Part shown: positions 2,189-50,771 of the stretch, piece by piece | Numbering within the stretch: the stretch's first letter is position 1 | Layout: the number at the start of each line of letters is the position of its first letter | Source of the DNA: Macrostomum lignano | Taxonomy: Eukaryota | Direction of reading: 5' to 3' | Length of the DNA stretch: 64,000 nt | NCBI GenBank assembly: GCA_002269645.1 | Contig: NIVC01000808.1 | Span: forward strand, 186,001-250,000 | Notes under the pieces: model-generated | What the model was told of the DNA's origin: nothing | Database searches by the model: none | Seen by the model: only the letters and a program-made list of their open reading frames with translations | Made by a program: the position numbers and the translations under genes

Positions 2189-3592
2189 ATGGAGCTGCCA
2201 GACGTGACCTATAATAAGCCCGAGTACATCGAGACCGCTTCTGGCAATAAGGTCTGCCGATTAACGGCCCTCTGTGGCAGTCAGAATATTGTACTTTCTG
2301 GCAAGGTCATCATCCAAACCGAAGCCGTGATCCGCGGCGACCTCGCCAATGTGCGAATCGGCCGCAGCACCGTCATCAGCCGGGGCGCCGTCATCCGGCC
2401 TCCGTTTAAAAAGTTTAGCAAGGGCGTCGCATTCTTCCCCTTGTACATTGGCGATCACGTGTTCATTGGCGAGAATTCCGTTATCAATGCTGCGCAGGTG
2501 CGTCTCGCCTCTGGGTGTAATGGCTTTTTGTTCTCTGTTGCTGGCCCGCACCAGCCTCCCAGATCCTCAGTTGCTGGGCCAGCCTCCCAGATTCTCAGTT
2601 GCTGGGCCAGCCTCCCAGATTCTCAGTTTCTGGGCCAGCCTCCCAGATCCTCAGTTGCTGGGCCAGCCTCCCAGATCCTCAGTTGCTGGGCCACTGCCGC
2701 CCTCCCAGGTCCCCAGTTGCTGGGCCAGCCTCCCAGATCCTCAGTTGCTGGGCCAGCCTCCCAGATCCTCAGTTGCTGGGCCACTGCCGCCCTCCCAGGT
2801 CCCCAGTTGCTTGGCTGGCCTCCTAAATCCTCAGTTGTTGGGCCAGCCTCCCAGATCCTCAGTTGCTGGGCCAGCCTCCCAGATCCTCAGCTGCTGGGCC
2901 AGCCTCCTAGATCCTCAGTTGCTAGGCCAGCCTCCCAGATCCTTAGTTGCTGGGCCAGCCTCCCAGATCCTCAGTTGCTGGGCCAGCCTCCCAGATCCTC
3001 AGCTGCTGAGCCAGCCTCCCAGATCCTCAGTTGCTGGGCCAGCCTCCCAGATCCTCAGTTGCTGGGTCAGCCTCCCAGATCCTCAGTTGCTGGGCCAGCC
3101 TCCCAGATCTTCAGTTGCTGGGCCAGCCTCCCAGATCCTCAGTTGCTGGGCCAGCCTCCCAGATCCTCAGTTGCTGGGCCAGCCTCCCAGATCATCAGTT
3201 GCTGGGCCAGCCTCCCAGATCCTCAGTTGCTGGGCCACAGCCAGCCTCCCAGATTCCCATTGGCTGGACCGCGGTGGCTGCCCTCCCATATTCTAGGCAA
3301 GCACTAGCACAAAGGTACTCTCACCGCCCATTACCAGGTGGGCTCCTACGTCCACGTAGGCAACAACTGCGTGATTGGCAGGCGCTGCGTTCTCAAAGAC
3401 TGCAGCGCAGTGGCCGACGGCTCAGTCCTGCCAGCGGAGACCGTGGTGCCACCCTTCACCATATTCAGCGGCTCGCCAGGACAGCTGGTTGGCTCGCTGC
3501 CAGACTGCACACCGGAGCTCATGACTCACCTCACCGAGAGCTACTATCAGCACTTCGTGCCTGCAGCCGCGGCGGCTCCCAAAGCTAACTAA
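2189..3592 (+). CDS. DCTN5: Dynactin subunit 5 (p25); exons 2189-2497 and 3338-3592, 187 aa
   Basis: Contains [34 protein letters not shown] and [23 protein letters not shown] at 2498 and AG at 3337 join AAQ|VGSY in phase 0. Confidence 0.95.
2553..3255 (+). repeat. 28-nt minisatellite CCTCCCAGATCCTCAGTTGCTGGGCCAG in the DCTN5 intron
   Basis: Direct tandem array; same unit at 10385-11385 and inverted at 4125-4260. Confidence 0.95.
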
Positions 3593-13282: not shown

Positions 13283-15900
13283 TCAACTCATTTTATTGTC
13301 ACCCGTATTAAGGGATTTAGTTAAGTGTTTGGAAAATGATGCCGCATGCAGGCTAAAGAGCAACAGCCAACGAAAAGATTCAACTCCATCCACGTCACCG
13401 CGGGAGAATGCTGCTTTGACGACTACGCCGGCCATTAGGCTGCCCAAGCTGCCGCCACCAGCATTCAATGGAGATCGGACGCAATGGACTGCATTCTGGG
13501 ACCGCTTCAACTCCAGCAGCCACGACAACCCGAGCCTCAGCGTCATCGACAAGTTCAGCTACCTGCAATCGTGCCTTTCAGGAGAAGCCTTGAGACTGGA
13601 TCGTGTTCGTTGGTCGAGATTCCTCGTCTTCTTCAAGCATTCCGGTTTCATCCGGTCGCTCTTACAGCTGATATTGAGAAGGCGTTTCTTCAGATTCGCA
13701 TTGCTGAAGAAGATCGGGGTGCACTGCGGTATCTCTGGCCACAGGATCCAAGTCGAGCTGAATCGCCACTCGTTGTTCTTCGTTACGCCACTTTGGTGTT
13801 CGGACTCACCTGCTCACCTGCAATTCTTGAGACGGTCATTCAACATCATTTAGCATCTCATCGGGACCAGGATGCGCAGTTCGTGGACAAAGTATCGAAA
13901 GAGATCTATATGTAGACAATCTAATCTCTGAGTGTGCAAGCGAACGGCAAGCCATGGAACTCATCCAAAAATCTCGTCACCTCTTCCGTCAGGCAGGTAT
14001 GAATCTACGCCATTGGCAGTCCAACAGTAAAGCGGTTTTGTCCGCAGTTCGAGCTAGCACTACAGACCAGGACATTCTGGCTCCAGCCCTGTCAGTAGAG
14101 ACTCTCAGAATGACGGAAGACCACAGGAGCTATTCCTCCGCCTCATTGGGTGAGGAGGGCGTGTTGTCGAAGGTCCTTGGGTTGCACTAAGAAATCTGAT
14201 CGGACGTGTTCGTGCTTCGGTTCTCACCACCAGAGGAGTTACTCAGAGGTACGCAATCCAAGCGAGTCATGCTACAGCTTCTGGCTCGTGTCTATGATCC
14301 TCTCGGCTTCCTAGTTCCACTGCTGACTTGGCCGAAAACAATGTTTCGGACGCTCTGTGTTCGCAAAGTTGCTTGGGATTGCCCGCTGGATGAGCCGACT
14401 GAACAACTGTGGCAGAAGTGGCTGCAGGACATGCTGAAAGCACGATTCCAAGTACCGCGGCTAGTGCTTTTCGCGACACGGGTGGTCCAAGAGATGCAGC
14501 TTCATGGCTTCTGTGACGCATCCGCAAAGTGCTTGTCTCTACCTACGATTTCAGTACACCGACGGTTCCGTCAGCTGTACCCTGGTGGCGGCGAAGGCCA
14601 GAATGGCTCCACTATCGGCCCTGTCGATTCCTCGGCTGGAACTGGTGCACTGATACTGGCCAGACTAGTGATTTCAGCCGAGTGAGCGAGTGAGCGAGCG
14701 AGTGACGAGTGCGAGCATCCTCAAGTCTGCCAAGTTTTCTGCTGGACAGATAGTGCCGATAATCTCTACTGGATACGACAGCACAAGCCCTGGAAGCTCT
14801 TTGTTCACAACCGAGTCGAGTCTCTGAGATCCGCCGGCTGCTTCCGGAGGAATCATGGCGACACGTGCCAGGCAATGAGAACCCTGCCGATGTTGCATCT
14901 CGCGGCACTTCGGTCGACAAGCTGAAGACTGATACCAGCTGGTGGCATGGTCCTGATTGGCTGACTCGACCTCCAGAAGGCTGGCCTGACCAATCCTTTC
15001 TCAATCTAACCTCAGCAACGGAAGACGAGGAGCAGAAGGCATCAGCAGACAAATCAATCGTTCTACTCACTGATGTTGTTCCGGACTTGGGACTGCATTG
15101 AGTTATACCAGATTCGGATTTCTAAGCTCATTAGGGTGACAGCTTACGTCTTTCGATTTGTCAAGAACCTACAAGTTCGAACTTCCAGAAGCACGAGTAT
15201 AAACAGAAGCAGAGGAGCGTTGGCTGAAAGAGGTACAACGAAGGAGTTTCCCTGCTGAGATTGCTCACTTTGAAATGTCGACAGCATCTGCGGACCTCGC
15301 AAAGCAGCTGAATCTCTTCCTCGACAGCAAAGGTCTGCTCCGAAGTCGGGGTCGATTGAGAGAATCAAACGTTGGTTCAGCTGCTGATTGCCCCATCCTC
15401 ATCCCGAACAAGACGCATCTAGAAGTTCTCCTCATCCGAGACGTGGACAGCAAAGTTCTGCACGGGGGAGTTCCAAGCACCCTTTGCAAACTGCGTGAGA
15501 AGTTTTGGCTGATCCGTGGCAGGCAGCGAGTGAAGGCAATTCTTGGAAAATGCGTCGTCTGCAGGCGTCTTCAGGGACTCCCGTTCGCTGTAAAGCAAGT
15601 TCCTGCGTTGCCAGAATCTCCCGTGAAAGCAATGAGAGCTTTCGAGTGGAGCGGGCTCGACTACTGTGGTCCGGTCAAGCTGAGAGACGACACTGCTGTC
15701 GAGAAGGGCTACATCTTAGTGTTCCCCTGCGCAGCAACGCGAGCGTTTCATCTAGAACTGGTGAAAGATCTAACAACTGAGCCCTAAGGAGATTCTGTGC
15801 AAGGAGAGGTATTCCTAGTCTCATCAGCGATAACGCTAAGACATTCACCAAAGCCGTGCGGAAATTGCAAGCATCGGAGAGGTAAAAGGTATTACTAGCA
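13283..15900 (+). mobile_element. Decayed BEL/Pao LTR retrotransposon: gag remnant fused by internal deletion to RT, RNase H and integrase
   Basis: Gag LPKL..F.GD..QW.AFWD.F..DKFSYL; RT ALTADIEKAFLQI and YVDN; YDPLGFL; LHGFCDAS; NPADVASRG; WWHGPDWL; HGG...C..C; GLDYCGP. Multiple stops and frameshifts. Confidence 0.92.
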
Positions 15901-16322: not shown

Positions 16323-17086
16323 TGGTGGGGTGGTTGTTGCGAGAGACTGAGCTAAATATATGATTAGGTATTGCAGGCCTCTCAGTGAGCTCTTAATTGT
16401 TGATTTTTTTCTTGTTAGCTAAACTGACGGCCCTCTGACTTGTTCAATTTCTACAACATTTGTGTTTTACATATACGAGTATAAAAGGTTATACAAACAG
16501 AACTGCTATTTTTAGTTTATAGCTTTGTCATATTTAAATTAAATATCTCGAAGTCTTGATCAAATCTCGTATTGTATCGTCAAAAAATATGGGATCTCGA
16601 AAATCTCGAAAATTCAATATTGACTCTCAATCAATCAAAAGTTTTAAGTTTCGTGCTAAGTTTTTATTTTTTGGTCGTTTCTCAGTTGCAAAATTATTAC
16701 AAAAAATTGCAATAGTTGTTTCAAAAACATCACATTTGTCTTGGGGATTAAAAGTCACATTGTGCAATAATAAATAATTTATTAGATTAAATTAGATTTT
16801 GAGTTAACTCTCATACAAATACTCGTAATAAAATTCTTTTTGATGCTCGTGAGAGTCCGTGGGCGACTCAAGGTTTTTAAAACAACGCGACAACCCGAAA
16901 TTCAACGCAGATAAACTATTTAATGATGCAATAAAATAAAAGAGTCAACTGATGTAAAATAATTCATAAATTTAACTTAATTTAACTTGAATTTTACTGA
17001 CAGAAAAACAAACTTTTGTCCCGGGATTCGGAACGTTAAATCCCTTGATCACCAATCCTAGGATTGCTATTCCTAGTTTAATTCAA

Positions 17087-17728
17087 TCAATTCAAAAGTG
17101 GAACTGATATCCTTATTTTGGATGCCACAAAGTTGACTAATTTAGAAAGAATTGAAAAAATATTGTCACCGCTGTTCCGCCTCGCTTCCTCCAACAATTT
17201 TTGGATGTCGTTTTCGAGTTTTACCATCGCCCTGTGAGCCTCTTCATTCGACTGTCGCAAGTTTTTCACCTTTTCTCTGAGAGTTGCTACATCACTACGC
17301 AGCTGCGAATGGTCCACTTCCTTCCACTGTCGCAAGTTATTCACCTTTTCTCTGAGAGTTGCTACATCACTACGCAGCTGCGAATGGTCCACTTCCTTCG
17401 ACTGTCGCAAGTTATTCACCTTTTCTCTGAGAGTTGCTACATCACTACGCAGCTGCGAATGGTCCACTTCCTTCGACTGTCGCAAGTTATTCACTTTTTC
17501 TCTGAGAGTTGCTAAATCACTACGCAGCTGGTCCACTTCCTTCGACTGTCGCAAGTTATTCACCTCTTGTCTGAGAGTTGCTAAATCACTACGCAGCTGG
17601 TCCACTTCATTTGACTGTCGCAAGTTTTCCACCTCTTGTCTGAGAGTTGCTACATCACTACGCAGCTGCGAATAGTCCATAGCAACTATTCCCACTATGC
17701 CGCATAGTATGAAACCCAGATACTGCAT
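17087..17728 (-). CDS. Intronless secreted coiled-coil repeat protein, 213 aa, six 23-25 aa units
   Basis: Hydrophobic N-terminus, heptad repeats, RR site and amphipathic tail; paralog at 22461-22736. Confidence 0.8.
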   Translation of the reverse strand: MQYLGFILCGIVGIVAMDYSQLRSDVATLRQEVENLRQSNEVDQLRSDLATLRQEVNNLRQSKEVDQLRSDLATLREKVNNLRQSKEVDHSQLRSDVATLREKVNNLRQSKEVDHSQLRSDVATLREKVNNLRQWKEVDHSQLRSDVATLREKVKNLRQSNEEAHRAMVKLENDIQKLLEEARRNSGDNIFSILSKLVNFVASKIRISVPLLN

Positions 17729-17892
17729 TTCTCACTGTTCAGAGTCTGAAATGGTAGAGAAAAGTGCTGTAGTGGTTTAGCTCGAGATTACGCACTCGAG
17801 TTTATTCATATTATTGTTAAGCATTGCGCCCAGTTTCAGTTAAGAAAAAAGTAAGTTATAGACCGCTCCAGTATATTTATATGTACTTGGCT

Positions 17893-18070
17893 GACAACAA
17901 CAACAACAAAACAACAAAATACGCGGCCCTGAGAGCAAAAGGCCACAGTTAGAGCAGGGCGTGTCAGATGGCGCGCCGCAGAGCCTGGGAGCGAACAAAG
18001 TCCGCTCCGTTGGCAGTGTCGGGCGCCCCAGCGTCGCACAGCAGGCAGTCCACGTATCGACGGGTTCGAC
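17893..18070 (-). repeat. Dispersed repeat with a (TTG)n tail; second copy at 58606-58765
   Basis: Shared GTCAGATGGCGCGCCGCAGAGC...GTTGGCAGTGTCGGGCGC...ATCGACGGGTT next to (AAC)n. Confidence 0.8.
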
Positions 18071-19354
18071 TTGGCTGAACTAATCGTTAGTCACTACGAG
18101 CTACGACATCCACGACACATAGAGCTGTGCACGTAACATATAATGTTGTCATCTAGAAAAAAGTAACTTTTTATTTTGCAAGCCCATTCTCTTCTGCCAA
18201 TCTCCGGCTCCAGCCAGCCTTCTGTCAGTCTCTCTGTCGCTCTCTGTTCCACATCCTGCAATCAGCTTTTCCATTCATTCTTCTGACAGCCAAGGACCTT
18301 GCGGCGATAAAACTCTAAGAGTTAGATAAAAGTTTGTTAGAACTCTGTTTTCATTTCTGGCTAGGCGCAACTGAATTGCTATACTCGTAAGGATATTGTT
18401 TAGACATATACATACTCTATAGACATTTGTGCATATTTTTGCCATCTTGGTCTCAGATTGCTTGAAAGAAGCCTCACTTAGCTCGCAAAACCTACCTTCG
18501 CGCAAAGTGACGCTATTAGCTCGTATACTCTCGTAGTTATATTATAACTCAATATTATCAAAGAAATTCACTTACTCGGGTTACGCCTTGCTTACTCGCA
18601 GTTTTTGTACTTGTAAATTGTAATTATACTGTACTTTAGTCACGGATGATGCTTTTGTAATATAATCTAGCACTGTAGCTTTGGCAACCGTTAACAGCAG
18701 TATGCAGCAGTTCTAAACGAAAAACGAAAATCCTAGGCCAATCACCCTTTATGCACGAAACGGGATTTATTTTTAGCCTGTGCTCTGCGGTCACTTGATT
18801 GGTACACGGGCCTGCTCAACCAAACTGCTCACAGAGAAAAGCTATAGCCTATTATACATGCGCATTACAGGCACGTACTAGCGGGGTAGAGAAGACGCAT
18901 CCCCCCAGTAGACAGGCAAAAATGATGACGCGCCCCTGATTCTGTTTCCCAATTTGGAAGTTCCCCAATTTTCGCTTTCGACTGCCATCGCAACAGAGGT
19001 ACATGCATGCAGTGGCGTAGCTAGGATTTTGAAATGGGGGGATAACTGGAAGGGAAAAACTTGCAATCAAATAAAATAGTTTTTTGTGATTTTTGCTTTA
19101 CATTTGCATTTAAAAAGTACCAGCAGTATTAATATTAATAGGCTAAAAAACCTTTTAATTTGTTAAAATCAGAATAAAAGACATCAGACATCGGGATCGA
19201 GATTCGCGGGATTCGCAGAAACATCGTTTAAAACATTTTAATAATAATTTACTAGTGAAAAACATTTTTATTGCATTTTTTGGTATATTTTTCTAAATCT
19301 GAAGCCGCTTTATTTTGATTTTTTTCAAAAAACCTCACTTTCCTTTCCTATTGC

Positions 19355-19950
19355 TATCTGGGTGGATGCTTGCTATCTTGGTGGATGCTTGCTATCTGGT
19401 GCATGCTTCTACAATATTTGGGGGGGGGTGCTTGCTATCTGCAGATGCTTGCTATCTAGGAGGATGCTTCAACAATATCTGGGGGATGCTTGCTATCTGC
19501 AGATGCTTGCTATCTAGGTGGATGCTTCAACAATATCTGGGGGATGCTTGCTATCTGCAGATGCTTGCTATCTGGGTGGATGCTTGCTATCTGGGTGGAT
19601 GCTTGCTATCTGGGTGGATGCTTGCTATCTGGGTGGATGCTTGCTATCTGCAGATGCTTGCTATCTGGGTGGATGCTTGCTATCTGGGTGGATGCTTGCT
19701 ATCTGGGTGGATGCTTGCTATCTGGGTGGATGCTTGCTATCTGGGTGGATGCTTGCTATCTGGGTGGATGCTTGCTATCTAGGTGGATGCTTCAACAATA
19801 TCTGTGGGATGCTTGCTATCTGCAGATGCTTGCTATCTGCAGATGCTTGCTATCTGGGTGGATGCTTGCTACGAGTATTAGGGGATGCTTGCTATCTGCG
19901 GTTGCTTACTTTTGGAGGGGGATGCTTGCTATCTGAAGGGATGCTTGCTG
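19355..19950 (+). repeat. 19/17-nt minisatellite GATGCTTGCTATCTGGGTG inside the hAT-like element
   Basis: Direct read. Confidence 0.93.
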
Positions 19951-20159
19951 TCTTAGGAATATTTTCTATTTAGGGGAATGTCTGTTATCTTTGTGAAAGC
20001 TATATTTAGTTGTCTGTTTGTTAATCTTAGAAAAAAGAGATTCATAGCAAATATCATTGTCCGTGACAATTTTACATGAATAAGGTGATTTATAAAAGTG
20101 AATAAGGAATTAGTGTTTAAGAAAAAGTGCTTTTTTAATTGTTTTCCATGAACTATTTT

Positions 20160-20210
20160 TGCTCCTTGCTTATTGGGCGCCCCGAAAAGGGGCCGCACTA
20201 GATTGCTAGT
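20160..20210 (+). mobile_element. Helitron-like 3' terminus; second copy on the minus strand at about 58203-58250
   Basis: GC hairpin GCGCCCCGAAAAGGGGCCGC ending 12 nt before CTAG|T; homologous sequence at 58.2 kb. Confidence 0.5.
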
Positions 20211-20814
20211 TTGTTTCCTATAAATCATTAAAATGGGATGATACCCGGTATATATACGTATCCCCCAGCTACGCTACTGTGTACATGCATGCGTGATGAA
20301 GCAAAGCAGAGCTGAAACTGTGTAATGAAATACAGAAGAATTTACGACTAAACGGAACTGCTCACAAAAGGTTTAAAAAATTGATGTCACTTTTTCTATT
20401 CGCTATTGTCTGTTAGTACTTACTTACCTGACGCATCCTGACTGCATGACTTTACTGGGCTGCGTCTTTTGTTCTTGTCATTCCGTTTAAAATACATGTA
20501 CATTTATGTTCTCTCGGCTTTCTAATGCAAGCTGTAGACTTTTCGACTCCCGAACCCATCCCGAAGGTAAACGTCTTAGTCAACCGAGTCCAAGCAGTGA
20601 GTCTCAAAGCTAAAAGGTTTGCTTTGCCTAAGGTTTTGCAGGCCAAAAAAAGTAACATGATTCATTCTACTGCTATAAATAGTATCATGATTCATTCCTC
20701 TGCTATAAATAGTAACATGATTCATCGTTAAGGTTTAGATGCGCATGTGTGCACTAGTCTACTTACAGTAGCATTCTATGATTAACAATTTTACTTCTTT
20801 TTTTGGAGGTAGAA

Positions 20815-21706
20815 CACTCTACAGAACACTCTGTCACTGAATCCTGGACATCTCCCACAGCACGGTGCGTTGCATCCTAACTGAAAACCTAGGCATGCAG
20901 AAGATCTTCGCCAAGTGGGTGCCCCATCTGCTGACACAAGAGCAGATGGAGGAGCGGGTGAGGCTGTCCAGAGAGCAGCTTCGTCAATTTCATCGAGAAG
21001 GCAACGACTTCCTCAGCAGGATTATGACAGGAGATGAGACTTGGATCTACGAATGGGATCCTGAGCTGAAGCGCCAGTCAGCACAGTGACTTCCAATTAA
21101 GGGGATCAGCAAGCCCGGAGAAGGTGCAGCGCAAGCAGAGTTCAATGAAGGTGATGCACATCATCTTCTTCGACGCCCATGGCATTCTGGAGGACTGGCC
21201 TGTGCCAGTCGGTACCAAGGTGAATGCGGAATATTACAAATGAATTCTGCAAGAGAAAGTGCAACCGGCGATCAGAAAGAATCGACCTGGCTTGCTGGAG
21301 AGAGGCGTCATCTCTCATCACGACAATGCGCCTTGTGCACCGCGCCAGAAGAGTGGAAGAGCTTCCTGGAGTCCTGGGACTGAGAAGTTCTTCTTCAGCC
21401 GCGCTATTCGCCTGTCTTGGCTCCGGCGGACTTCTACATTTTCCCAAGGATGAAGAAGGGTCAACTTTTTGCCTCGGTGGAACAAATTAATAACAGTGCT
21501 TCATCAGCTCTCCGGCATCTGACCATTGGCGGTTGCAGCCCTGCCTTTGAGGCGTGGGTGCGCGGCTGGGAGAAGTGCGTTGACCTCGGCGGCAAATTTG
21601 TACAGTAACTATGAGTTCATTTTGCAGTTGCAAAGTTTTGTTGATTGTTGGGTCACTAGTTAGTCTTTTATAGCATAAGCGAAACTTACTTTTGGGATAG
21701 CCTTAA
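20815..21706 (+). mobile_element. 5'-truncated mariner (DD34D-type) transposase pseudogene with 3' TIR
   Basis: WVPHLL, TGDETW, HHDNAP and YSP.LAP.DF motifs across a stop and frameshifts; ends ACTTTTGGGATAGCC. Confidence 0.9.
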
Positions 21707-22460
21707 ATACCAATTTGCCAAATGAATCTGAATTAATTGGGTCCATCAGCTACTGCCCCCCCTCTACAACTGCAAAATTGCAGCCGCCCTCTGTTGTAAA
21801 AAAAAAGAACACAAAACAAGATCAGAGCAATTTAGGGGGTCGATGAAAAAGGCTCCGTTTTGTCCTTCGTGTTGCTTTCCGAGACAACTAAAATCCAAAG
21901 ACGAACTTTAATTTTTAATAAATCTAGATTCTAGAGTTCTAAATTTCGTGTTTAGCTTTTCAATTTATTTTTATTTTGGCAAAATCACGCAGCAATATTT
22001 TTGTTTCGAAAACATCATATTGGTCTTGGTGATTAAATGATGCATAATTCACAACTGTAAAGTATTAATTAATCAATAAAAATTATCTCGATCTACTACA
22101 GATCATGAGTTTACTCTCTCAAACAAAAAATAACTAACAGAATACTACTAATAAAAAACTATGAACGGATCGAATTAATTCATCAAGTATGCAAAAGCGT
22201 TAGCAAAAATTCTGTGTGAGCGGGAGAATCCGAGCGATTTAATGTTTAAAGCGAAATTTATAGCGAAAATTTATACGGTTTGACGCCGTACGAGCTATAA
22301 AGTATGAATGATGCACCAATATGAAGAAACAAATGATGTAAAAAATATCAAATCCAGTTCAATTTTTTTTGATTTTTCGTGAAACTATAACAAAATTTCG
22401 TCCCCGGACCTCAAATAATCCTTGATTTCCTAGTATCGGATTGCGATCCTTAATTCATAA

Positions 22461-22736
22461 TCAGCTCAAAAGTGGAACCCATTTTTTGATTTTCGACGCC
22501 ACAGCATTGACTACTTTAAAAAGAAAGGGAAAGCCGTTCCAGCCGTTTCGCCTCGCTTCCTTCAACTCCAACAATTTGTTGTTTTGAAGTTTTATCATCG
22601 CCCTGTAAGCCTGTTCATTTGACTGTCGCAAGTTTTTCACCTCTTCTCTGAGAGTTTCTATATCACTGCGCATGTGCAGATAGTCCATAGCAACCATTCC
22701 CACTATGACGCACAGTATGTAGCCCAGATATTGCAT
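22461..22736 (-). CDS. Short paralog (91 aa, one repeat unit) of the secreted coiled-coil protein
   Basis: MQYLGYILCVIVGMVAMDY...LRQSNEQAYRAMIKL..EARRNGWNGFPFLFKVVNAVASKIKKWVPLLS. Confidence 0.78.
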   Translation of the reverse strand: MQYLGYILCVIVGMVAMDYLHMRSDIETLREEVKNLRQSNEQAYRAMIKLQNNKLLELKEARRNGWNGFPFLFKVVNAVASKIKKWVPLLS

Positions 22737-22913
22737 TGCTCACTATTTAGAGTCTGAAATGGTAGAGAAAAAGTGAAAGTGGTTTAAGCTAGAGATTACG
22801 CACTCGATTTTATTCATATTGCTGAGTATTGCAGTTGCAGTTGAGAAGAAAGTGAGTTATAAACTGCTCCAGTAAATTGCATTGATATGCACTTGGCTGG
22901 ACAGCCACGAGAT

Positions 22914-25134
22914 GGGTCACCGTCTTTTCACTGCCACAATTTAACTCCTGGCCTTTTGACTGCCGGCGACTTTTGACTGCCGGCGACTTTTGACTGCCGG
23001 CGACTTTTGACTGCCAGACTTTTGACTGCCAGACTTTTGACTGCCAGACTTTTGACTGCCAGACTTTTGACTGCCGGACTTTTGACTGCCAGACTTTTGA
23101 CTGCCGGACTTTTGACTGCCAGCGACTTTTGACTGCCAGACTTTTGACTGCCAGACTTTTGACTGCCAGACTTTTGACTGCCAGCGACTTTTGACTGCCA
23201 GACTTTTGACTGCCAGACTTTTGACTGCCAGACTTTTGACTGCCAGACTTTTGACTGCCAGACTTTTGACTGCCAGACTTTTGACTGCCAGACTTTTGAC
23301 TGCCGGACTTTTGACTGCCGGACTTTTGACTGCCGGCGACTTTTGACTGCCAGACTTTTGACTGCCGGTATTTTAACTGCTAGACTTTTGAATGCCGGTA
23401 TTTTAACTGCCAGACTTTTGACTGCCGGACTTTTGACTGCCAGACTTTTGACTGCCAAACTTTTGACTGCCGGTATTTTAACTGCCAGACTTTTGAATGC
23501 CGGTATTTTAACTGCCAGACTTTTAACTGCCAGACTTTTGACTGCCTGACTTTTGACAGCCAGACTTTTGACTGCCAGACTTTCGACTGTCTAGTCATCT
23601 TTTCATTTTACATTTGGGCTGGGAGGAGAATCTACAGAACGGAGCCAGAGGGCAGTTAGTTTACTTGGGTGAAGCAGGAGATTCTTGAATAGGTGGAAGG
23701 AGATCTTTTTACGAGGGAGGCACAGAAACAGCATGTAGTGATAGCGAGTGAATATAGTGAATTAGTAAATATGAGGCGTCAGCCCATGAAATGGCTTCAG
23801 AAGATATTTCAATCCCTGAATAATTCTGAGTATGAATTTAGTAGGTTTAATTTCCCCAATCCAAAGGTTTTTGGAGCATCTCAACAATAATAAACAAGTC
23901 TTATTTCTAAGACTTTTGTTATTGTTAACTTATAATTACTAATTGACAGATACGACTAATGATGACTGAGTTAGCGAATTCGTATTCATTTATCGCATGC
24001 TAATTGATTAAAAGTACTAACTAATCATAAATAAGAACAAGTATAATGTGGTATTTCCGGCTGTCAAAAGTCTGGCAGCCAAAAGTCGCCGGCAGTCAAA
24101 AGTCCGACAGTCAAAAGTCTGGCAGTCAAAAGTCGCTGGCAGTCAAAAGTCTGGCAGTCAAAAGTCTGGCAGTCAAAAGTCGCCAGCAGTCAAAAGTCCG
24201 GCAGTCAAAAGTCGCCGGCAGTCAAAAGTCCGACAGTCAAAAGTCTGGCAGTCAAAAGTCGCTGGCAGTCAAAAGTCTGGCAGTCAAAAGTCGCCGGCAG
24301 TCAAAAGTCCGGCAATCAAAAGTCTGGCAGTCAAAAGTCCGGCTGTCAAAAGTCAGGCAGTCAAAAGTCGCCGGCAGTCAAAAGTCCGACAGTCAAAAGT
24401 CTGGCAGTCAAAAGTCGCTGGCAGTCAAAAGTCTGGCAGTCAAAAGTCTGGCAGTCAAAAGTCGCCGGCAGTCAAAAGTCCGACAGTCAAAAGTCTGGCA
24501 GTCAAAAGTCGCCGGCAGTCAAAAGTCCGGCAGTCAAAAGTCTGGCAGTCAAAATCGCTGGCAGTCAAAAGCCTGGCAGTCAAAAGTCCGGCAGTCAAAA
24601 TCGCTGGCAGTCAAAAGTCCGGCAGTCAAAAGTCTGGCAGTCAAAAGTCTGACAGTCAAAATCGCTGGCAGTCAAAAGTCCAGAAGTCAAATTGTGGCAG
24701 TCAAAAGTCGCCAGCAGTCAAAAGTCCGGCAGTCAAAAGTCGCCAGCAGTCAAAAGTCCGGCAGTCAAAAGTCTGGCAGTCAAAAGTCGCCGGCAGTCAA
24801 AAGTCCGGCAGTCAAAAGTCTGGCAGTCAAAATCGCTGGCAGTCAAAAGTCCGGCAGTCAAAAGTACGGCAGTCAAAATCGCTGGCAGTCAAAAGTCTGG
24901 CAGTCAAAAGTCTGACAGTCAAAAGTCTGACAGTCAAAATCGCTGGCAGTCAAAAGTCCAGAAGTCAAATTGTGGCAGTCAAAAGTCGCCAGCAGTCAAA
25001 AGTCCAGAAGTCATTGTGGCAGTCAAAATCGCCGGCAGTCAAAAGTCGCCGGCAGTCAAAATCGCCGGCAGTCAAAAGTCGCCGGCAGTCAAAAGTCCAG
25101 AAGTCAAATTGTGGCAGTCAAAAGTCGGTGACCC
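22914..25134. mobile_element. Foldback-type element: inverted arms of 15/17-nt GACTGCCAGACTTTT repeats around an AT-rich spacer
   Basis: Left terminus GGGTCACCGTCTTTTCACTGCCACAATTT matches the reverse complement of the right terminus; arrays at about 22930-23590 and 24050-25130; no TSD found. Confidence 0.8.
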
Positions 25135-27126
25135 GTGAAAACTCGTTGTCTTTTGTCAAAATCTATGGCTCCACAAGGCGACGCTTGATTTCGCTCTTTA
25201 ACGCACTGTGCGCCACTACTACACGGGATTTAGAAATGGCAAGTAATAGTGCCAAGATGAGCCAGCCAGCCGCCACGAGGTAACTGCATTCATGTTGCCA
25301 AGTCTCGCTGTATCTGCGTTTTTATTTATTCTTAATCTAGTTACAGTACATGTACAGCGATTTTGTGTAGGATATCAAATGTTTCAGACCCAATCGCAGT
25401 AATGTCACTCCTTTTATGATTTTCGACATGACTTAAAAACAAAAAGTTTCCATTTTCCTCTATCGATGACTTAATTAAAGAGTGAGACAACTAATCCTCC
25501 ACCGCTTGAAACAGACACTCCGTTTTCATTGCTGGCTAGGCGCAACTGAATTGCTATGAGGATATAATTGTTTGACTCGATGTCTGAGTTTGAGCAACTG
25601 CTCACTTTATTCATACGGTCTAATATTATCAAAGAAGTTTACTTACCCTTGTTTACTCGCAGTGTTTGTACTTGTAAATTGTAATTGTACTTTTTCATGG
25701 ATGATGCTTCGGAACAGTCTAGCACTGCAGCTTTGGCATTTGGCAACCGTTAACAGCAGTTATGCAGCAGTTATAAACGAAAAACGAAAAACGAAAATCT
25801 AACCTTTTTGAAGTGCAAATCAGCCTTTATGCACGAAACGGAATTTATTTTTAGCCTGTGCTCTGCGGTCACTTGATTGCTACACGGGCCTGCTCAACCA
25901 AACTGCTCATTCAGAAAAGCTATTATACATGCGCATTGCAGGCACGAAGGTAGGGGGGGGGGGGTTGAGACGCTCCCCCAAGTAGACAGGCAAAAATTAT
26001 TTTCCCCAATTCTCGCTTTTAACTGCCATAGCTACGAGTGTACATGCGTGTGTGATCAAACAAAGCAGAGCTGAAACTGTGTACTAAAGTGCAGAAGAAT
26101 TTACGACTACGAGTAAGCGGAACTGCTCACAAAAGGTTTAAAAAATTGAAGTAACTTTCTCTATTCGCTATTGTCTGTTAGTACTTACTTACCTGACGCA
26201 TGACTTTACTTTTATGGGCTGCGTCTTTTGTTCTTGTTATTCCGTTTAAAGTACATGTATGTTTTCTCGGCTTTTAAATTCGAACTACACTTTTCTAGGT
26301 CTAAGGCCCAGTAGGAAGTCCAGACTTTGACGAGGGAATAATAGGGAATACAATTCCCCCTAAGCAAATTCCCCGGGGATGGATTCCCTAGAGTAATGTT
26401 AGAGAAAGTTCTCGGACACGCCTGCGAAGCATGAAGAGCAGTGCTCAGTGGGGCAGACTTCGTGTAATGGATGCAAGTTCTTGGCGATGGACAAAACCAC
26501 CTGTCAGAATTCCGATTACGGAAGTAGGAAGTCAATCCTGTGTTCCCGGGATTAACCTTCGGTATAACCCTCTTTAGAACTCCAGTTTTGTTAAAATAAA
26601 GACAAGCACACAGGGTGGCAAAAGTTTGTATCAGACCTCGCAAGTAAATAATTATAAAACTATTATTCTATTGATGCAAGTTGAAAATTCGGCCGCACTT
26701 TAATAAAAACTGTTTATTAAATAACTTTTATCAGTTTCATAATTAATTCAGGTAAGAAGAAAATGATACACGTTTCAAATTAGCAATTTGAAAAGCATTT
26801 TATATGCGGGAAATGAAATATAGCGTATTGAAACAATTTTTTAAACAGTAAATTTTATTCTTATCTTATCTATAAGCGAGGTTATACTGGTAATTTAAGA
26901 TAAGAGGAAAATTTATTTCATCAAGCAATTAGCGTCATATTATAAGCTGAATATTAATTATTGGCCAGGTTTGGCATTGATTATGCCAATACAAAACAGA
27001 ACCACGGTGTGTTTATTCGCTCGTTTTTTTAATTACTAAATTTATATACGCAATTCGTGTGAACTTTAAATAAACAAATAAACATATATATTGACACAGT
27101 CTAGCGCGCAATAGTAAAATAATATG

Positions 27127-30100
27127 CCCGGTTGAAAAAAATACTGGATTAGCCCATTGAAATTGGCCCGCTCATCGGCCACTTCGTGTCAGAAAAGCCC
27201 GCTCTAAAAGCCCGCTCATTTTTCCAAATCAACGAGTCTCAAATCGGCCCGTTCCACGGCCCGCTTCTGGGCCCGCTGGCTGGCCCGCTGGTTGGCCCGT
27301 TCTAAACCGGCCCGCTGGCTGGCCCGTTGTTTGGCCCGGTGGCTGGCCCGTTGGTTGGCCCGCTCACTGGCCCACTCATTGACCCGTTCTAAACCGGCCT
27401 ACTGGCTGGCCCGCTGATTGGCCCCCTCATTGGCCCGTTCTAAACCGGCCCGCTGGTTGGCCCGTTGGTTGGCCCGCTGATTGGCCCGTTCTTAACCGGC
27501 CCGCTGGTTGGCCCGTTGGTTGGCCCGCTCATTGGCCCACTCATTGACCCGTTGTAAACCGGCCTGCTGGCTGGCCCGCTCATTGGCCCGTTCTAAACCG
27601 GCCTACTGGCTGGCCCGCTGATTGGCCCCCTCATTGGCCCGTTCTAAACCGGCCCGCTGGTTGGCCCGTTGGTTGGCCCGCTGATTGGCCCGTTCTTAAC
27701 CGGCCCGCTGGTTGGCCCGTTGGTTGGCCCGCTCATTGGCCCACTCATTGACCCGTTGTAAACCGGCCTGCTGGCTGGCCCGCTCATTGGCCCGTTCTAA
27801 ACCAGCCCGCTCATTGGCCCGTTCTAAACCGGCCCGCTCATTGGCCCGTTCTAAACCGGCCCGCTGGCTGGCCAGTTGGTTGGCCCGCTGGTTGGCCCGT
27901 TCTAAACCGGCCCGCTGGTTGGCCCGTTGGTTGGCCCGCTGGCTGGCCCGCTCACTGGCCCGTTCTAAACCGGCCCGCTGGCTGGCCCGTTGTTTGGCCC
28001 GGTGGCTGGCCCGTTGGTTGGCCCGCTCACTGGCCCACTCATTGACCCGTTCTAAACCGGCCTGCTGGCTGGCCCGCTCATTGGCCCGTTCTAAACCAGC
28101 CCGCTGGCTGGCCCGTTGGTTGGCCCGCTGGTTGGCCCGTTCTAAACCGGCCCGCTGGTTGGCCCGTTGGTTGGCCCGCTGGTTGGCCCGCTCACTGGCC
28201 CACTCATTGACCCGTTGTAAACCGGCCTGCTGGCTGGCCCGCTCATTGGCCCGTTCTAAACCGGCCCGCTGGTTGGCCCGCTGAACGAACAAAAAAAATA
28301 AGTAAAGAAGCAAAATAAGCATGAGATTTCTAAGTCAGACCGATGAGCCGTACAATTAGCTTTTTTATAAAAACCGGGAATATACTTCATCGGATCTGGT
28401 AAAAACAAAGAGATGTTAAGGTTAAAATTGAATACTAGTATTTTTTCATGGTGGCACGAATAGCTAAAAGAGCTAATATAGCTAATAGAGCTATCTGAGC
28501 TAAAAGAGCTAATATATAAAAGAGCAACCCTAGCCTCAGAGTCTATTCTCAACCCAAAGTAATGTTTGTCAGCATAGTGAAAAATTGTCACCACAATCGA
28601 GGCCTAGTCTCTACTACTCGCTTTCCTCTTCATTTTCTGCGCAGGCGCCACTTTTCGCAGACGAACTCTCCCGATCCCGTACGGTCCTGACTGTAGGGCG
28701 GAAGACCTCGCCGAGTTCGGCGTCTGTGAATAGTTTTTTGTCCTCCTCTGAGACCAGTTTACTGGCCAGGTAGGACCGTATGGCCGCCTTCTTGGAGCTA
28801 TCCAGCTCAACCCGGTTGGCCGCTTTCTCTCCTTTCACCTGTCGACCAGCCCAAGATGCGGTTCGCAGGTCTTGCTCAGGGCACACAGCAAGTATGACTA
28901 GCCGAATGGCTCGTCTGCGAATCTTGTTATTGTTTGCGGCTTTTCGCATTTCAACTGCTGCGGCTTCCAATTTTGTCAGGGCCAACGGACAAACCGTGAC
29001 ACCGGGAAATGCAGCTATCAGCGGCACACGTTTCGACGACTGGTTGCCCATCATGGAGGTCGATATATTTGCGATTGCCGTCGCAATGGCGTGGCTCACA
29101 AATCCACTGGTAAGCTGCGATGACGTCGAGCCACTTGGCTCGGCATCGATGCCGATATCGGCAGCAGCTGATGACGACTCTCCGGGTGCAGTACTCGAAC
29201 CAGCGACCAACGTTTCGTAGTCACTAATAGAGCGCACCAGACTTTCGAGGTGGCTGCATGATTCTGTAGTTCTACGTGCCACCTCGTTGGCCGACCGCGC
29301 CTGCGCCGTGACGAACCGTAGCGTCTCAAGTATCTGAGAATTCGCATGCATGGAACTTGCAAGACGGGTGTCATACTTTTGCAGCACGTCATCTTTCTGT
29401 GCCAGTTCCTGTTTCAGCTGCTCATTCTCAGACCGAATGGCCTCATTCTCAATCTTCAGGTTGGCTGCATCAGTTTCAGCAGCCCCCCGCTTGTCCGTCT
29501 CTTCTCGATTTGCCTCACGTAGGTCACGACATTCGATGTCGAGGTTCCGGCAGCGCGGGCATCCGGCATCAGGGTGATTTATAACGGGTTGCACGCGCCT
29601 ATAGGCGCCTGCAGAGCCCCACCCCATTAAAGTTGCCGATTTGGCCAGGTTGTCCCGGGCAGCGTAGGTGGACTTCCTATCCGGAAAAGGCCCGGCTGTC
29701 AGGAAAGCGTCGAAAGTTTTTGCACTCGGGCTATGGCCAGTCCGTACTTGTACTTTAACGCCGACTGTTCGTGTTACGGGGTCCGGGTCGACGATGCACT
29801 TTTGGTCGATGGCCATAACTTTGCCGGTGTTAGTGTACGTGAGCACCCACCAAATAGCTTTGTGGATGACCATGACACGGGGCGCCTTAGCCTTTGGTGG
29901 TCCACCGGCCCTATTGCGATGCCGCATCTCCTTTCTCGACTCTAGATCTGGCTCGCTCGATGAGTCAGATAGAGATTCGCGATGCCGATGCCTATCGGCA
30001 TTGGCTTCGGCTTTCCGTTTTGTAGTAGAGCCGGTCGGCTCCGCGGACACGGCCGTGCTCATATCGGAGCCGATTAGCGCCGTTGAAGTGGCGTCGTGGG

Positions 30101-31878
30101 CTTTAGGGAGCGTCCTCACAATCGTCGCACTGCTCGATGGCGTCCAACGCCATTGGAGCGCCACTCCAATAGTCGTCATCTGGAGCTTCTTCGCCTGGTT
30201 CCTCAACGATAGATCTAGAAGATACGTCCTCATCGTCGTTGTCTGAATACTGCGAGCCGGTAGGCTCGACGACCATGGGAGTCTGGACGCCACTGCTACA
30301 TCCACCTGTTGCCAATGCTGGCTGCCAGCTGCTGCCAACACTGGCTACACTGTTGCTTGTTTGCGCGTCATGAGTGGTTGGTACGTCATGAGTGGTCCGA
30401 GTTGCAGTTAGTAAATGGCTCACTGAAGCTTCTGCTCGTGTCGGACGGGCTGTCGCCGCAACTGTCTGTCTGAGTGATTCTTTGAGTCGACTGAAGCGCC
30501 GTGCGATGGCAACTGACTTCTTGTCGAGCTCTTTTAGTCGTTCAAGTGACTGAAAATGAAGAAATTGAATACCTGTGTGACTAGGAGAGAATCCGTACTA
30601 AAATTGTTAATTAACAAATACCATCATTCTACTATCAGTTTGAATCAGTTTGCTATCTTAGCCCAAGAGCCAACAAAGGGCGAAGCAATGGTTTCACACT
30701 AAACTGGGTGATATCTGAAGTACATACGTCACAACGTAGCGCGATATACAAATTGCTGTGGGCGTATGAGGCGATAAAAATAAATAAAATTGACACACTC
30801 ATTGTACATGTCATCATGAAATTTGTGTATGCACAGTTTATTGGACAGCATTAGTGCTCTACAAATCAAATAATTGCCCGAGCGCCAAGACACCGCAAAA
30901 GTTTACACGTACAAGTTTATACACCATTTGATAAGATTATCACGTTCACAACAAGTCAGCGGGCCGGTTTAGAACGGGTCAGTGAGCGGGCCAACCAGCG
31001 GGCCGTGCAGCGGGCCGGTTTAGAACGGACCATTGAGCGGGCCAACCAGCGGGCCGGTTTAGAACGGGCCAACCAGCGGGCCAACCAGCGGGCCAACCAG
31101 CGGGCCGGTTTAGAACGGGCCAACCAGCGGGCCAACCAGCGGGCCAACTAGTGGGCCGAGCAGCGGGCCGGTTTAGATCGGGCCAGTGAGCGGGCCAACC
31201 AGCGGGCCGTGCAGCGGGCCGGTTTAGAACGGACCATTGAGCGGGCCAACCAGCGGGCCAACCAGCGGGCCGGTTTAGAACGGGCCAGTGAGCGGGCCAA
31301 CTAGTGGGCCGAGCAGCTGGCCGGTTTAGAACGGACCATTGAGCGGGCCAACCAGCGGGCCAACCAGCGGGCCGGTTTAGAACGGGCCAACCAGCGGGCC
31401 AGTGAGCGGGCCAACTAGTGGGCCGAGCAGCTGGCCGGTTTAGAACGGACCATTGAGCGGGCCAACCAGCGGGCCAACCAGCGGGCCGGTTTAGAACGGG
31501 CCAACCAGCGGGCCAGTGAGCGGGCCAACTAGTGGGCCGAGCAGCTGGCCGGTTTAGAACGGGCCATTGAGCGGGCCAACCAACGGGCCAACCAGCGGGC
31601 CGGTTTAGAACGGGCCAACCAGCGGGCCAACCAGTGGGCCGCGCAGCGGGCCGGTTTAGAACGGGCCAGTGAGCGGGCCAACCAGCGGGCTAATCAGCGG
31701 GCCGATCTGCGGATCGGTTTCGAGCGGGCCATTAGCGGGCTAATCAGCGGGCTTCAGAGCAGGCCGGGTTTCAGCGGGCCAATTTGTTGTAAAAGGCCTG
31801 TAATACGGGCCGATTCGCTTCGGCCCGCTAATGGCCCGCTCAAAAGCCCACTGAGGCCCGCTAAGTTTTTCAACCGGG
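27127..31878 (-). mobile_element. CACTA/CMC-like non-autonomous DNA transposon, 4752 bp
   Basis: Perfect 13-bp TIR CCCGGTTGAAAAA, 3-bp TSD ATG on both sides, and opposed subterminal GGCCCG arrays (27165-28282 and 30957-31860). Confidence 0.8.
28614..30627 (-). CDS. Coiled-coil plus putative C-terminal BEN-domain protein inside the element; exons 30627-30622 and 30549-28614, with a +1 break at 30105
   Basis: ATGATG|GTATTT, 72-nt intron, TTTTCAG acceptor. C-terminal AIRLVILAVCPEQDLRTASWAG...LDSSKKAAIRSY fits the BEN pattern by eye. Confidence 0.65.
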
Positions 31879-34510: not shown

Positions 34511-44560
<10,050 letters not shown>

Positions 44561-45379
44561 TGCTGGGTGGTGTTTGACTTGGATGGCATTTAAGTCAGGT
44601 TAGTTCATGGATGAGGTGAAAAGCTGCAGTGAACTGTGTCTTTATGAATAACTAATTCATAAGGTGATCAAAATGTGAACTAGTTTAACTCACTGTAGGG
44701 AAGCCTTCCTGTACAGTCGTCAACATTTTTGTACCAGATGACATTGCAATAGAATTTGCTTTAGAATAGAATGTCCACCCAATTTTTTAATGGTGGACTG
44801 GTGGGCTACCCAGGAAGCAACATCTGCAAATGTTAAATAAACATTTTGTACTTGAATATCAGTTGAATAATATCAACCAGTTTGCCTATGCTTAAGATCT
44901 ATATTTTATAGCTAAGCCTCATTGTCATTCTTTCAAGCTCATAGTGTATAGCTAAAGGGTATAGAAATATTGTTATATATTCCTACTATATTCTGAAAAT
45001 GACTATTCATTAAAAACTGTTAACTTCCAGTTTTAGCTTTTTAAACTATTTTTACTAGTTAAATAACCACAAATAAAGAATATTGCATTCAAAACCTTTG
45101 AAAAAAAGTGACAAAACATATTAGAAACCTAAAAATGCTATAGCTAGTTGCAAACAGCAAGGGTTTTCTGATATATTTTAATTTTTTTTATATTTTTACC
45201 TAGCCATGCATCTAGCTAAGAAAAACAAAGTGCTGATTTGGCATGTAGGGTCCAAATTTAGGATAGATGTATTAAAATAAAAGTTGATATGCTAAACCTA
45301 TAAAAATAGTAAATAAAAATATAAAAAACTAGAGCATATATAATTCTAACAATATTTAATTTATAGTATCTATAGCCAT

Positions 45380-46035
45380 TAGACTAGCATCAATAGGTCA
45401 AGGGTGCAACTTAGACTAGCATCAATAGGTCAAGGTCAAGCTTAGGCTAGCATCAATAGGTCAAGGGTCAATCTTAGACTAGCATCAACAGGTCAAGGGT
45501 CAATCTTAGACTAGCAGCAACATCAATAGGTCAAGGGTCAATCTTAGACTAGCATCAACAGGTCAAGGGTCAATCTTAGACTAGCATCAATAGGTCAAGG
45601 GTCAATCTTAGACTAGCATCAATAGGTCAAGGGTCAAGCTTAGACTAGCATCAAGATCAACAGGTCAAGGGTCAATCTTAGACTAGCATCAATAGGTCAA
45701 GGGTCAATCTTAGACTAGCATCAACATCAATAGGTCAAGGGTCAATCTTAGACTAGCATCAATAGGTCAAGGATCAAGCTTAGACTAGCATCAATAGGTC
45801 AAGGGTGCAACTAAGACTAGCATCAATAGGTCAAAGATGCAGCTTAGACTAGTATCAATATGTCAAAGGTGCAACTAAGACTAGTATCAATAGGTCAAAG
45901 ATGCAGCTTAGACTAGTATCAATAGGTCAAAGGTGCAACTAAGACTAGTATCAATAGGTCAAAGATGCAGCTTAGACTAGTATCAATAGGTCAAAGGTGC
46001 AACTAAGACTAGTATCAATAGGTCAAGGGTCTAGC
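45380..46035 (+). repeat. 32-nt minisatellite TTAGACTAGCATCAATAGGTCAAGGGTCAATC
   Basis: Direct read; unit variants change along the array. Confidence 0.93.
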
Positions 46036-46613
46036 TTAGGCTTAGACTTAATAAGTTTAGACTATCCACTCCTGCCTATATTATAATTTATTAAAAAACA
46101 TTTATTAGATTTACATTAATCAAAAGTTCAAACTCTTGGCTATAAGCATACTTCAACTGATTGTATTTTTATGTAACTTATGCCAGAGACCAATTAAATG
46201 CTTAATTAGATTAATATAAAAATGTTTTTTAAAATTATTTAAAATAATTTTAGGGCTTATATAAAATCAATTTGATTTTTATATATTTTTAAAGAATTAG
46301 AAGAATACAATGCTAAAATCTTTTTAAAAAGTATATAACAATAACAAGTTCATAATAAAATTATAATGGGTCACCCCATAGAGGGATAAAAGGGTAATTA
46401 TCCTTTAAGGGCTAGGATAGTTACCTGGGTACAATCAGCCCTTTCTGCTTCTAGCCTATATTTGCAGGGGCCCTCTTGATTCTTTTACAAAATTGATAAT
46501 TGTATAACTCATTTTGAATGCATGCCAAATCTAGGAAAACACATTTGTTATAATACACATATTTTTCATAATATTTTATGTGAACTAATTTTTGATTAAA
46601 CTAGCAGTAAATG

Positions 46614-48469: not shown

Positions 48470-48760
48470 GACATTGATTCTATTGTCATATAGGCTATTG
48501 ATTTTAGAGCTATATTGATCCTATTGTCATATAGGCTATTGATTTTAGAGCTGTATTAATTCTATTATCATATTGGCTATTGATTTTAGAGCTATATTGA
48601 TTCTATTATCATATTGGCTATTGATTTTAGAGCTATATTGATTCTATTGTCATATAGGCTATTGATTTTAGAGCTATATTGATTTTATTGTCATATTGGC
48701 TATTGATTTTAGAGCTATATTGATTCTATTGTCATATAGGCTATTGATTTTAGAGCTATA
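48470..48760 (+). repeat. 41-nt AT-rich minisatellite
   Basis: TATTGATTTTAGAGCTATATTGATTCTATTGTCATATAGGC, about 7 units. Confidence 0.92.
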
Positions 48761-50752: not shown

Positions 50753-50771
50753 AACAAAGAGGGCCTATAAA

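Follow-up and report, generated by a model that had tools for sequence, protein, structure and literature searches.

Which kind of product is made by two small neighbouring genes of Macrostomum lignano, a flatworm that is free-living, that have so far been seen in no other organism? The genes, here called p1 and p2, are located on contig NIVC01000808.1 of assembly Mlig_3_7 (GCA_002269645.1), of which a stretch of 64,000 nucleotides (nt; positions 186,001 to 250,000 of the forward strand, here referred to as the window) was analysed. They constitute a real, previously uncharacterised gene pair, and every functional step that we assign to them below is reached by inference. We tentatively propose that p1 and p2 are lineage-restricted precursors of a secreted membrane-active peptide, which is probably released by cleavage at a conserved Arg-Arg (RR) pair, and we regard this as possible without considering it established.

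Both proteins consist of the same four modules, namely a hydrophobic leader of 16-17 residues, a heptad stalk, an EARRN junction and a cationic amphipathic tail of 28-29 residues. The translations thereby confirm the original prediction, which had described two open reading frames (ORFs) with a hydrophobic leader, a heptad region, EARR and the tails given below. In BLASTP comparisons p1 and p2 are 76% identical over the first 41 residues. In the region that begins with the last stalk unit and includes the tail they are 63% identical, and p1 differs from p2 chiefly by a 75-nt tandem array. The flanking DNA can be aligned as well, with 83% identity over about 165 nt upstream of the genes and 69-71% identity over about 175 nt on their downstream side, which agrees with the earlier description, whereas the tails, for which it had noted divergence at many residues, are not strongly diverged, as 17 of the 28 aligned tail residues are identical. 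Together with two further pairs of similar segments (Table 1), this indicates that p1 and p2 are tandem paralogs with a duplication unit of roughly 5.7 kb that carries one gene each; minisatellites and a mariner-like remnant entered this duplication later. Searching the whole window with both proteins by tblastn did not reveal a third copy. The family size, for which such a search had been suggested, thus comes to two paralogs here, and a second locus, described below, carries both genes again.

That p1 and p2 are genuine paralogous protein-coding genes follows from the frame-specific ratio of nonsynonymous to synonymous substitution rates (dN/dS, omega) and from the transcript-derived annotation of p2. 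In the true frame dN/dS between p1 and p2 is 0.39, or 0.36 without the ambiguously aligned linker, and synonymous sites have changed more than nonsynonymous ones (Fisher P=0.002), whereas the same alignment gives 0.84 and 1.39 in the two shifted frames. Leader, junction and tail are the parts that carry the signal of selection, as would be predicted for a protein in which the tail does the work. A dN/dS analysis of the tail had been proposed beforehand, and it speaks against diversification between the paralogs, since the tail is the most constrained module with an omega of 0.23; in this comparison, positive selection on the tail is thus unsupported.

The protein set of GenBank contains p2 at two loci under the name "hypothetical protein", with the exact protein being encoded on contig NIVC01000808.1 and its cluster mate PAA89220.1 being 93% identical, but it does not contain p1. 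The gene models that GenBank lists for this assembly go back to a genome-guided RNA-seq transcriptome, from which repeat-overlapping transcripts were removed (PMC5730564). As the annotation was built from a transcriptome, p2 should have RNA support at both loci, and the transcript-based model of p2 stops at the same codon after 91 residues. The lack of a GenBank protein for p1 is likely due to the removal of repeat-overlapping transcripts, as p1 contains the 75-nt array. Missing sequences in run assemblies (Logan) were dismissed as evidence against expression on the basis of a control, in which the exon of dynactin subunit 5 (DCTN5) in the window had no M. lignano match of at least 90% identity in these assemblies either, indicating that Logan barely covers M. 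lignano transcripts. The identifier Mlig020770 of the short gene was found neither in literature full text nor in paper supplements, among which the positional tables of PMC7336406 were covered in part.

Following EARR, the tails read NSGDNIFSILSKLVNFVASKIRISVPLLN in p1 and NGWNGFPFLFKVVNAVASKIKKWVPLLS in p2. The hydrophobic moment of the 20-residue tail core is 0.45-0.51, a value that was reached by 460 (p1) and 52 (p2) of 10000 shuffles, and with moments above 95.4% (p1) and 99.5% (p2) of the shuffled sequences and charges of +2 and +4, the amphipathic and cationic nature claimed for the tails is borne out. When the same computation is applied to magainin 2 and melittin, the tails are in their range of moment and charge. 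The hydrophobic face is broad, and the narrow polar face is rich in Lys, Ser and Asn. A glycosylphosphatidylinositol-anchor signal, which the small residues NSGD or NGWNG followed by a hydrophobic end might suggest, was rejected by inspection, because the tail is amphipathic with three to four Lys/Arg residues.

The junction E-A-R-R-N-x-G that precedes the tail is invariant in the four known gene copies, with a single synonymous CGG/CGA change inside it. Mature p1 contains only one dibasic pair, the RR of the junction, compared with a mean of 6.05 pairs in shuffled sequences (P=0.0065, a value that is inflated by the non-independence of the repeats), and p2 carries an additional KK within the tail. 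We think that a depletion of dibasic pairs everywhere but at the junction is better explained by a processing site than by a hinge. RR is not a furin site, since P4 is Glu, and a dibasic convertase of the PC2/kexin type would be the candidate for a cleavage at E-A-R-R. In structural models RR falls where a predicted long helix gives way to a Gly/Asn break, and in p2 it is found at the end of the AlphaFold2 helix 40-63, ahead of the NGWNG break.

The leaders, MQYLGFILCGIVGIVAM in p1 and MQYLGYILCVIVGMVAM in p2, start with MQY, continue with a hydrophobic core, and possess Gly at position -4, Ile or Met at -3 and Ala at -1 before Met-Asp. The core of about 15 hydrophobic residues has a Kyte-Doolittle mean of 2.3-2.4, and the maximum over a 19-residue window is 1.68-1.73, which is borderline for a membrane helix. 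A core of this length appears typical of signal peptides, which would be cleaved, and short compared with membrane anchors. The stalk consists of one 25-residue unit in p2 and of six units of 23 or 25 residues in p1, and its heptad pattern has an 11-residue insertion per unit. When all copies are taken together, which gives 16 stalk units, the Leu/Val core is kept and almost all variation affects the surface (Q/E, E/K, E/N/K, N/K), which fits a stalk that is needed only as a helical spacer. With many coiled-coil families of Pfam the p1 stalk gives matches, among them Lectin_N (45.2 bits), BicD, LPP (30.9 bits) and DivIC, and at E values up to 1 there are 83 matching families, mostly coiled coils. 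As p1 matches dozens of unrelated coiled-coil families, the Lectin_N and LPP scores reflect composition, and we read the profile matches of the stalk as compositional and not as due to homology. AlphaFold2 models p1 as all-helical with a helix 188-208 in the tail, and p2 with helices 2-16, 23-63 and 69-86 that are interrupted at NGWNG. Opposite the p1 repeat array, the antisense strand has an open frame of 104 codons as well (17201-17515, +), which results from the 75-nt periodicity and gives no evidence of a second gene.

The start of both genes is well defined. The ATG has an A at position -3, and since a TGA stands in its frame two codons upstream, an N-terminal extension of p1 or p2 can be excluded. 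The sequence TTTCAG is found 17 nt ahead of the ATG in all four known copies, and a donor-like GTAAT, which is likewise kept in all four, is located 46 nt upstream of it. TTTCAG fits the spliced-leader acceptor motif [T/C]TNCAG of M. lignano (PMC8629364). By its sequence, the site may serve as acceptor in trans-splicing, or it may mark where a short intron in the 5' untranslated region (UTR) ends. If the spliced leader, which ends in ATG, was added at TTTCAG, an out-of-frame upstream ORF of 17 codons would be opened. Start context, upstream stop, acceptor and RR junction are all preserved in the four copies.

A word-seeded profile search of 5.8 billion proteins and an exhaustive phmmer search of 1.84 billion representative proteins both returned only p2 of the window itself. 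Only coiled-coil-type matches were obtained with Pfam and NCBIfam, and only weak repeat or coiled-coil matches in a sequence search of the PDB. As the genus Macrostomum is poorly covered, with even DCTN5 lacking a near-identical match, "orphan" means here that no relative was found outside the genus, and congeners may possess such genes. The family is undescribed, as the original prediction had supposed, and so far known only from M. lignano.

Table 1. Positions of the features in the window, of one gene copy at the second locus (L002), and constraint per module. Coordinates refer to the window unless marked L002.
Feature	Position	Strand	Basis or remark
p1, long paralog, complete single-exon coding sequence, 213 residues	17087-17728	-	ORF and translation
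p1 predicted signal peptide, residues 1-16 (MQYLGFILCGIVGIVA, then MD)	17681-17728	-	hydrophobic core and residue pattern; putative cleavage
p1 stalk, six tandem heptad units of 23/25 residues	17240-17677	-	Tandem Repeats Finder: period 75, 6.0 copies, 92% matches
p1 RR, residues 183-184, candidate dibasic processing site in EARRN junction	17177-17182	-	only K/R-K/R pair in mature p1
p1 tail, 29 residues: NSGDN linker, amphipathic helix, VPLLN	17090-17176	-	net charge +2; best 18-residue hydrophobic moment 0.55
p1 conserved 5' block (putative promoter and 5'UTR)	17729-17893	-	83% identical to p2 block
p1 TTTCAG acceptor	17746-17751	-	kept in all four copies
p1 conserved 3' block (putative 3'UTR)	16911-17086	-	ATTAAA 165 nt after stop
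p2, short paralog, complete single-exon coding sequence, 91 residues, one stalk unit	22461-22736	-	ORF; exact protein in NCBI/UniRef
p2 predicted signal peptide, residues 1-16	22689-22736	-	same basis as p1; predicted helix 2-16
p2 RR, residues 62-63	22548-22553	-	invariant E60 A61 R62 R63 N64 G65
p2 tail, 28 residues: NGWNG linker, amphipathic helix, VPLLS	22464-22547	-	net charge +4; hydrophobic moment 0.51; predicted helix 69-86
p2 conserved 5' block	22737-22899	-	alignment with p1 block
p2 TTTCAG acceptor	22754-22759	-	kept in all four copies
p2 conserved 3' block (putative 3'UTR)	22297-22460	-	nearest ATTAAA 220 nt after stop
Duplication segment pair	18551-18926 and 25622-26000		direct blastn, 78%
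Second duplication segment pair	20279-20544 and 26038-26295		inferred via cross-matches to L002
L002 p1', eight units, 1-nt deletion truncating the tail	L002 16417-17181		
Dynactin subunit 5 (DCTN5) exon	2189-2500	+	recognisable host gene
Retrotransposon gag (DUF1759)	13296-13850	+	recognisable element
MARK/Par-1 kinase KA1 domain	34514-34801	-	recognisable host gene
ARID4-like gene (RBB1NT, ARID, chromo/Tudor-knot)	54326-58098	+	recognisable host gene
Rab-type small GTPase	62458-63126	+	recognisable host gene
Leader			paralog dN/dS 0.26
Stalk unit			paralog dN/dS 0.8-1.35
Linker			paralog dN/dS 0.5
Tail			paralog dN/dS 0.23 (Fisher P=0.009)

According to the reading that we favour, the p1 and p2 proteins would enter the secretory pathway, where the 16-residue signal peptide would be cleaved and the stalk may oligomerise. 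A dibasic-specific convertase of the kexin/PC2 type would then probably free the tail at RR, and the tail would be the effector that binds or perturbs lipid membranes, so that p1 and p2 would be precursors of peptides of the linear amphipathic host-defence or cytolytic type. Several findings weigh against this, and some of them concern the proteins as such. The charge of the p1 tail is only +2, the stalk is not acidic but has a net charge of +2 in both paralogs, the 167-residue, repeat-expanding stalk is a costly carrier for one 29-residue peptide, and the AlphaFold2 models that place helices in both tails have a low predicted local distance difference test score (pLDDT) of only 56-58. Others come from the second locus, contig NIVC01000158.1, which is 96-98% identical to the region in the window, has the same MARK neighbour, and is either an allele or a copy from a recent genome duplication. 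Its short gene p2' is intact and differs from p2 in six amino acids (six nonsynonymous changes and one synonymous change), whereas the long gene p1' has eight stalk units instead of six, which means that the repeat number in the long gene is unstable over a very short timescale. Apart from four nonsynonymous changes and one synonymous change, p1' has a 1-nt deletion by which the tail end ...NFVASKIRISVPLLN becomes ...NFMAPK-stop and the last nine residues are lost. The two loci thus differ by 10 nonsynonymous and 2 synonymous changes in total, although these twelve substitutions are too few to tell an omega of 0.4 from 1 (binomial estimate, P about 0.08), and with 2.5% the ORFs have diverged between the loci at least as much as the flanks (1.3-2.4%). 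This recent pattern could be due to relaxed constraint after duplication, to positive selection or, in the case of the deletion, to an error in the long-read assembly.

A further-reaching version of the proposal, which we hold to be unlikely, is that p1 and p2 form a host-defence or cytolytic family of this flatworm's own, in which the expanding and contracting stalk would pre-assemble several tails into an oligomer before the convertase releases them; to our knowledge, such a delivery by a stalk oligomer has not been described for any antimicrobial peptide family. Alternatively, the tail may never be released. The whole protein of 75-197 residues would then be secreted as a helical oligomer and be functional as such, with lipids or hydrophobic ligands being bound in the manner of apolipoproteins, helminth defence molecules (HDMs) or cestode antigen B, and with RR being only a hinge. 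This is rather unlikely, although the constraint on the linker between stalk and tail (omega 0.5) speaks for it. The dibasic depletion outside the junction fits a processing site better, Pfam gives no match to such families, p2 has no similarity to FhHDM-1 residues 51-89, and both genes have one coding exon where HDM genes have four exons (PMC7373315). It is decidedly more doubtful that the leader is an uncleaved signal anchor from which the coiled coil projects the tail onto a second membrane or surface, as a tether or ruler comparable to lectin-receptor stalks, tetherin or Lpp. The borderline Kyte-Doolittle maximum, the variation of the stalk between 1, 6 and 8 units and the LPP profile matches (30.9 bits in Pfam, 50 bits in NCBIfam) would be compatible with it, as would the Lectin_N score of p1. 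In p2, residues 6-47 align to positions 46-87 of the Lectin_N profile, which presumably cover the membrane anchor and the first part of the neck. But p2 is far below the Lectin_N cutoff (16.6 vs 28.3 bits) and the profile matches of p1 are compositional, the core is limited to about 15 residues, lacks preceding cytoplasmic residues and has an Asp directly behind it, a G-I-V-A cleavage motif follows the core, and there is neither a lectin domain nor a lipobox nor a downstream exon, the tail being coding and ending in a stop. The Lectin_N match is also the only point in favour of the view that the ORFs belong as first exons to a larger gene, e.g. for a C-type lectin, with the tail being read-through into an intron. 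We consider this extremely improbable and rejected a lectin-receptor first exon, because the tail is under in-frame purifying selection, a conserved GT donor is missing at the junction (p2 has none at all), and the transcript-based GenBank model of p2 has the same stop.

It would be improbable, too, that p1 and p2 are young lineage-specific transcribed ORFs that have little or no function now and drift toward pseudogenes. The failure to find a homolog, the missing annotation of p1, the excess of nonsynonymous changes between the loci, the frameshift in one tail and an ORF divergence that at least equals that of the flanks speak for such a decay. The paralogs, in contrast, carry the frame-specific signature of purifying selection described above, three of the four copies are fully intact, all four keep start context, upstream stop, acceptor and RR, and the changes between the loci are too few to count as evidence of lost constraint. 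Finally, a role as seminal-fluid protein, made in the prostate gland and transferred at mating, could be combined with any of the molecular readings and had been one of the options of the original prediction. The prostate transcripts of M. lignano typically encode proteins that are small, look secreted, are restricted to the lineage, contain repeats and show many nonsynonymous differences; 38 out of 65 such transcripts encode signal peptides (PMC5977470). The option has gained no support, as the complete table of in-situ-characterised transcripts (PMC7336406 file 16, including Weber 2018 and Lengerer 2018) lists no identifier beginning with Mlig0207, and no sequence motif was found in the Weber supplements. 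This is a weak argument, since it applies to the identifier of p2 and the positional-expression tables were covered in part. We give it a very small chance.

The ORFs around p1 and p2 are ordinary animal genes plus repeats (Table 1). Minisatellites with periods of 15, 19, 16, 32 and 41 nt are unusually dense in the window (22953-25000, 19351-19953, 44000-44557, 45379-46039 and 48473-48760), and no more than about 220 nt separate the p2 start codon from the beginning of the 15-nt array upstream of it. From other arrays, long spurious ORFs in several frames arise, for example at 2.2-3.6, 6.4-7.1, 8.7-9.4, 36.4-37.3 and 41.2-42.2 kb. Between p1 and p2, at about 20865-21600, a mariner-like transposase remnant was recognised by eye from a ETWIYEWDPELK... 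motif; a 74-residue fragment of it has no Pfam match at E<=0.001. The same ORF is also present at the second locus (L002 11253-11519), which in addition contains a 1.3-kb insertion with a 115-residue ORF that is absent from the window (L002 14420-15719). An ORF of 575 residues at 28614-30341 (-) is coiled-coil-looking in its middle part and matches no Pfam family at E<=0.001. The GC content falls sharply to 0.28-0.31 at 46000-54000, compared with 0.40-0.62 elsewhere, and this block holds a single ORF of at least 90 residues.

Reviews state that flatworms are without the canonical families of antimicrobial peptides, and free-living species have hardly been studied in this respect (PMC12466427), which makes a lineage-specific family plausible. 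If the tails are membrane-active, p1 and p2 would represent a new lineage-specific effector family with an unusual precursor, in which a coiled-coil repeat stalk replaces the acidic propiece, and if in addition the stalk delivers them as an oligomer for host defence, this would be an early experimentally tractable effector of its kind in a free-living flatworm. If they are not, what is left is a young orphan gene pair with measurable coding constraint, variation in repeat number and what may be the onset of loss following genome duplication. In either case the two-gene candidate effector family is directly testable, as screens by in situ hybridisation are established in M. lignano, for which stable transgenesis has also been reported (PMC7053086).

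Among known systems, the necks of type II C-type lectin receptors (PF03954 Lectin_N; DC-SIGN/CD23-type) are similar to p1 and p2 in combining a hydrophobic N-terminus with variable copies of 23/25-residue coiled-coil units, and the score of p1, which exceeds the cutoff, is accumulated over five repeat stretches. Since p2 remains below the cutoff and the defining features, i.e. cytoplasmic tail, lectin domain and downstream exon, are missing, membership in this family was rejected. With Braun's lipoprotein Lpp (PF04728, PRK15396) the pair shares the small size, a coiled coil of the DQLxSDVxTL type and, by prediction, the N-terminal signal, and in Lpp the C-terminus is functional, as it would be in p1 and p2. 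In NCBIfam p1 scores 50.2 bits for PRK15396, where the cutoff is 108, no match is obtained with p2, and no Lpp match was found in the PDB at E<=0.001. A lipobox is absent as well (FILC has Leu at -1), and the genes belong to a eukaryotic host, with a splice acceptor and animal neighbours. A horizontal transfer of Lpp was therefore rejected, and we judge the similarity to be that of a convergent coiled coil. Weak PDB matches to leucine-rich repeat proteins (E 2e-6 to 2e-4) include no stretch that is individually significant, and this reading was likewise discarded, as the units lack the LxxLxLxxN motif and the model is all-helical.

Of the same phylum are the trematode HDMs (FhHDM-1/MF6p, Sm16), which have a similar size (90 residues, compared with 91 in p2), a signal peptide and a mostly alpha-helical structure. 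Their C-terminal amphipathic helix is released by cleavage after Arg (PMC3093369), and their genes are reported to be exclusive to trematodes (PMC7373315). HDMs are free of repeats and released by cathepsin L, whereas p1 has tandem repeats and both proteins have a candidate dibasic site, and BLASTP of p2 against FhHDM-1, restricted to residues 51-89, gave no alignment at E<=100. On these grounds, and because of the single coding exon, HDM membership was rejected, and the resemblance is one of architecture only. Proteins of the micro-exon gene (MEG) group are built from micro-exons, unlike p1 and p2 with their single coding exon, which have no sequence similarity to them and occur in a free-living organism. 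In schistosomes, MEG-8.2 is a small secreted lineage-restricted protein, the amphipathic helices of which lyse cells (PMC12998952). p1 and p2 are likewise small, secreted-looking, lineage-restricted flatworm proteins with an amphipathic helix.

The layout of the two proteins is comparable to that of the precursors of linear amphipathic host-defence peptides, such as the dermaseptins and magainins of frogs, the arminins or hCAP18/LL-37, in which signal, propiece and basic site are followed by a C-terminal amphipathic cationic helix of 20-37 residues. This is a functional class and not one of homology, and p1 and p2 have no sequence homology to its members and no amidation signal. The propieces of classical antimicrobial precursors are acidic and neutralise the peptide, whereas that of p1 and p2 has a net charge of +2 and is a tandem-repeat coiled coil of 1, 6 or 8 units, and the tail of p1, with its low charge and broad hydrophobic face, has only putative membrane activity. 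The layout of an antimicrobial precursor that had been proposed from the DNA is thus found with regard to the signal-like leader, the stalk, the invariant RR as basic site and the cationic amphipathic helix, and departs from it in the anionic propiece. The arminins of Hydra are restricted to their taxon, and p1 and p2 share this property with them.

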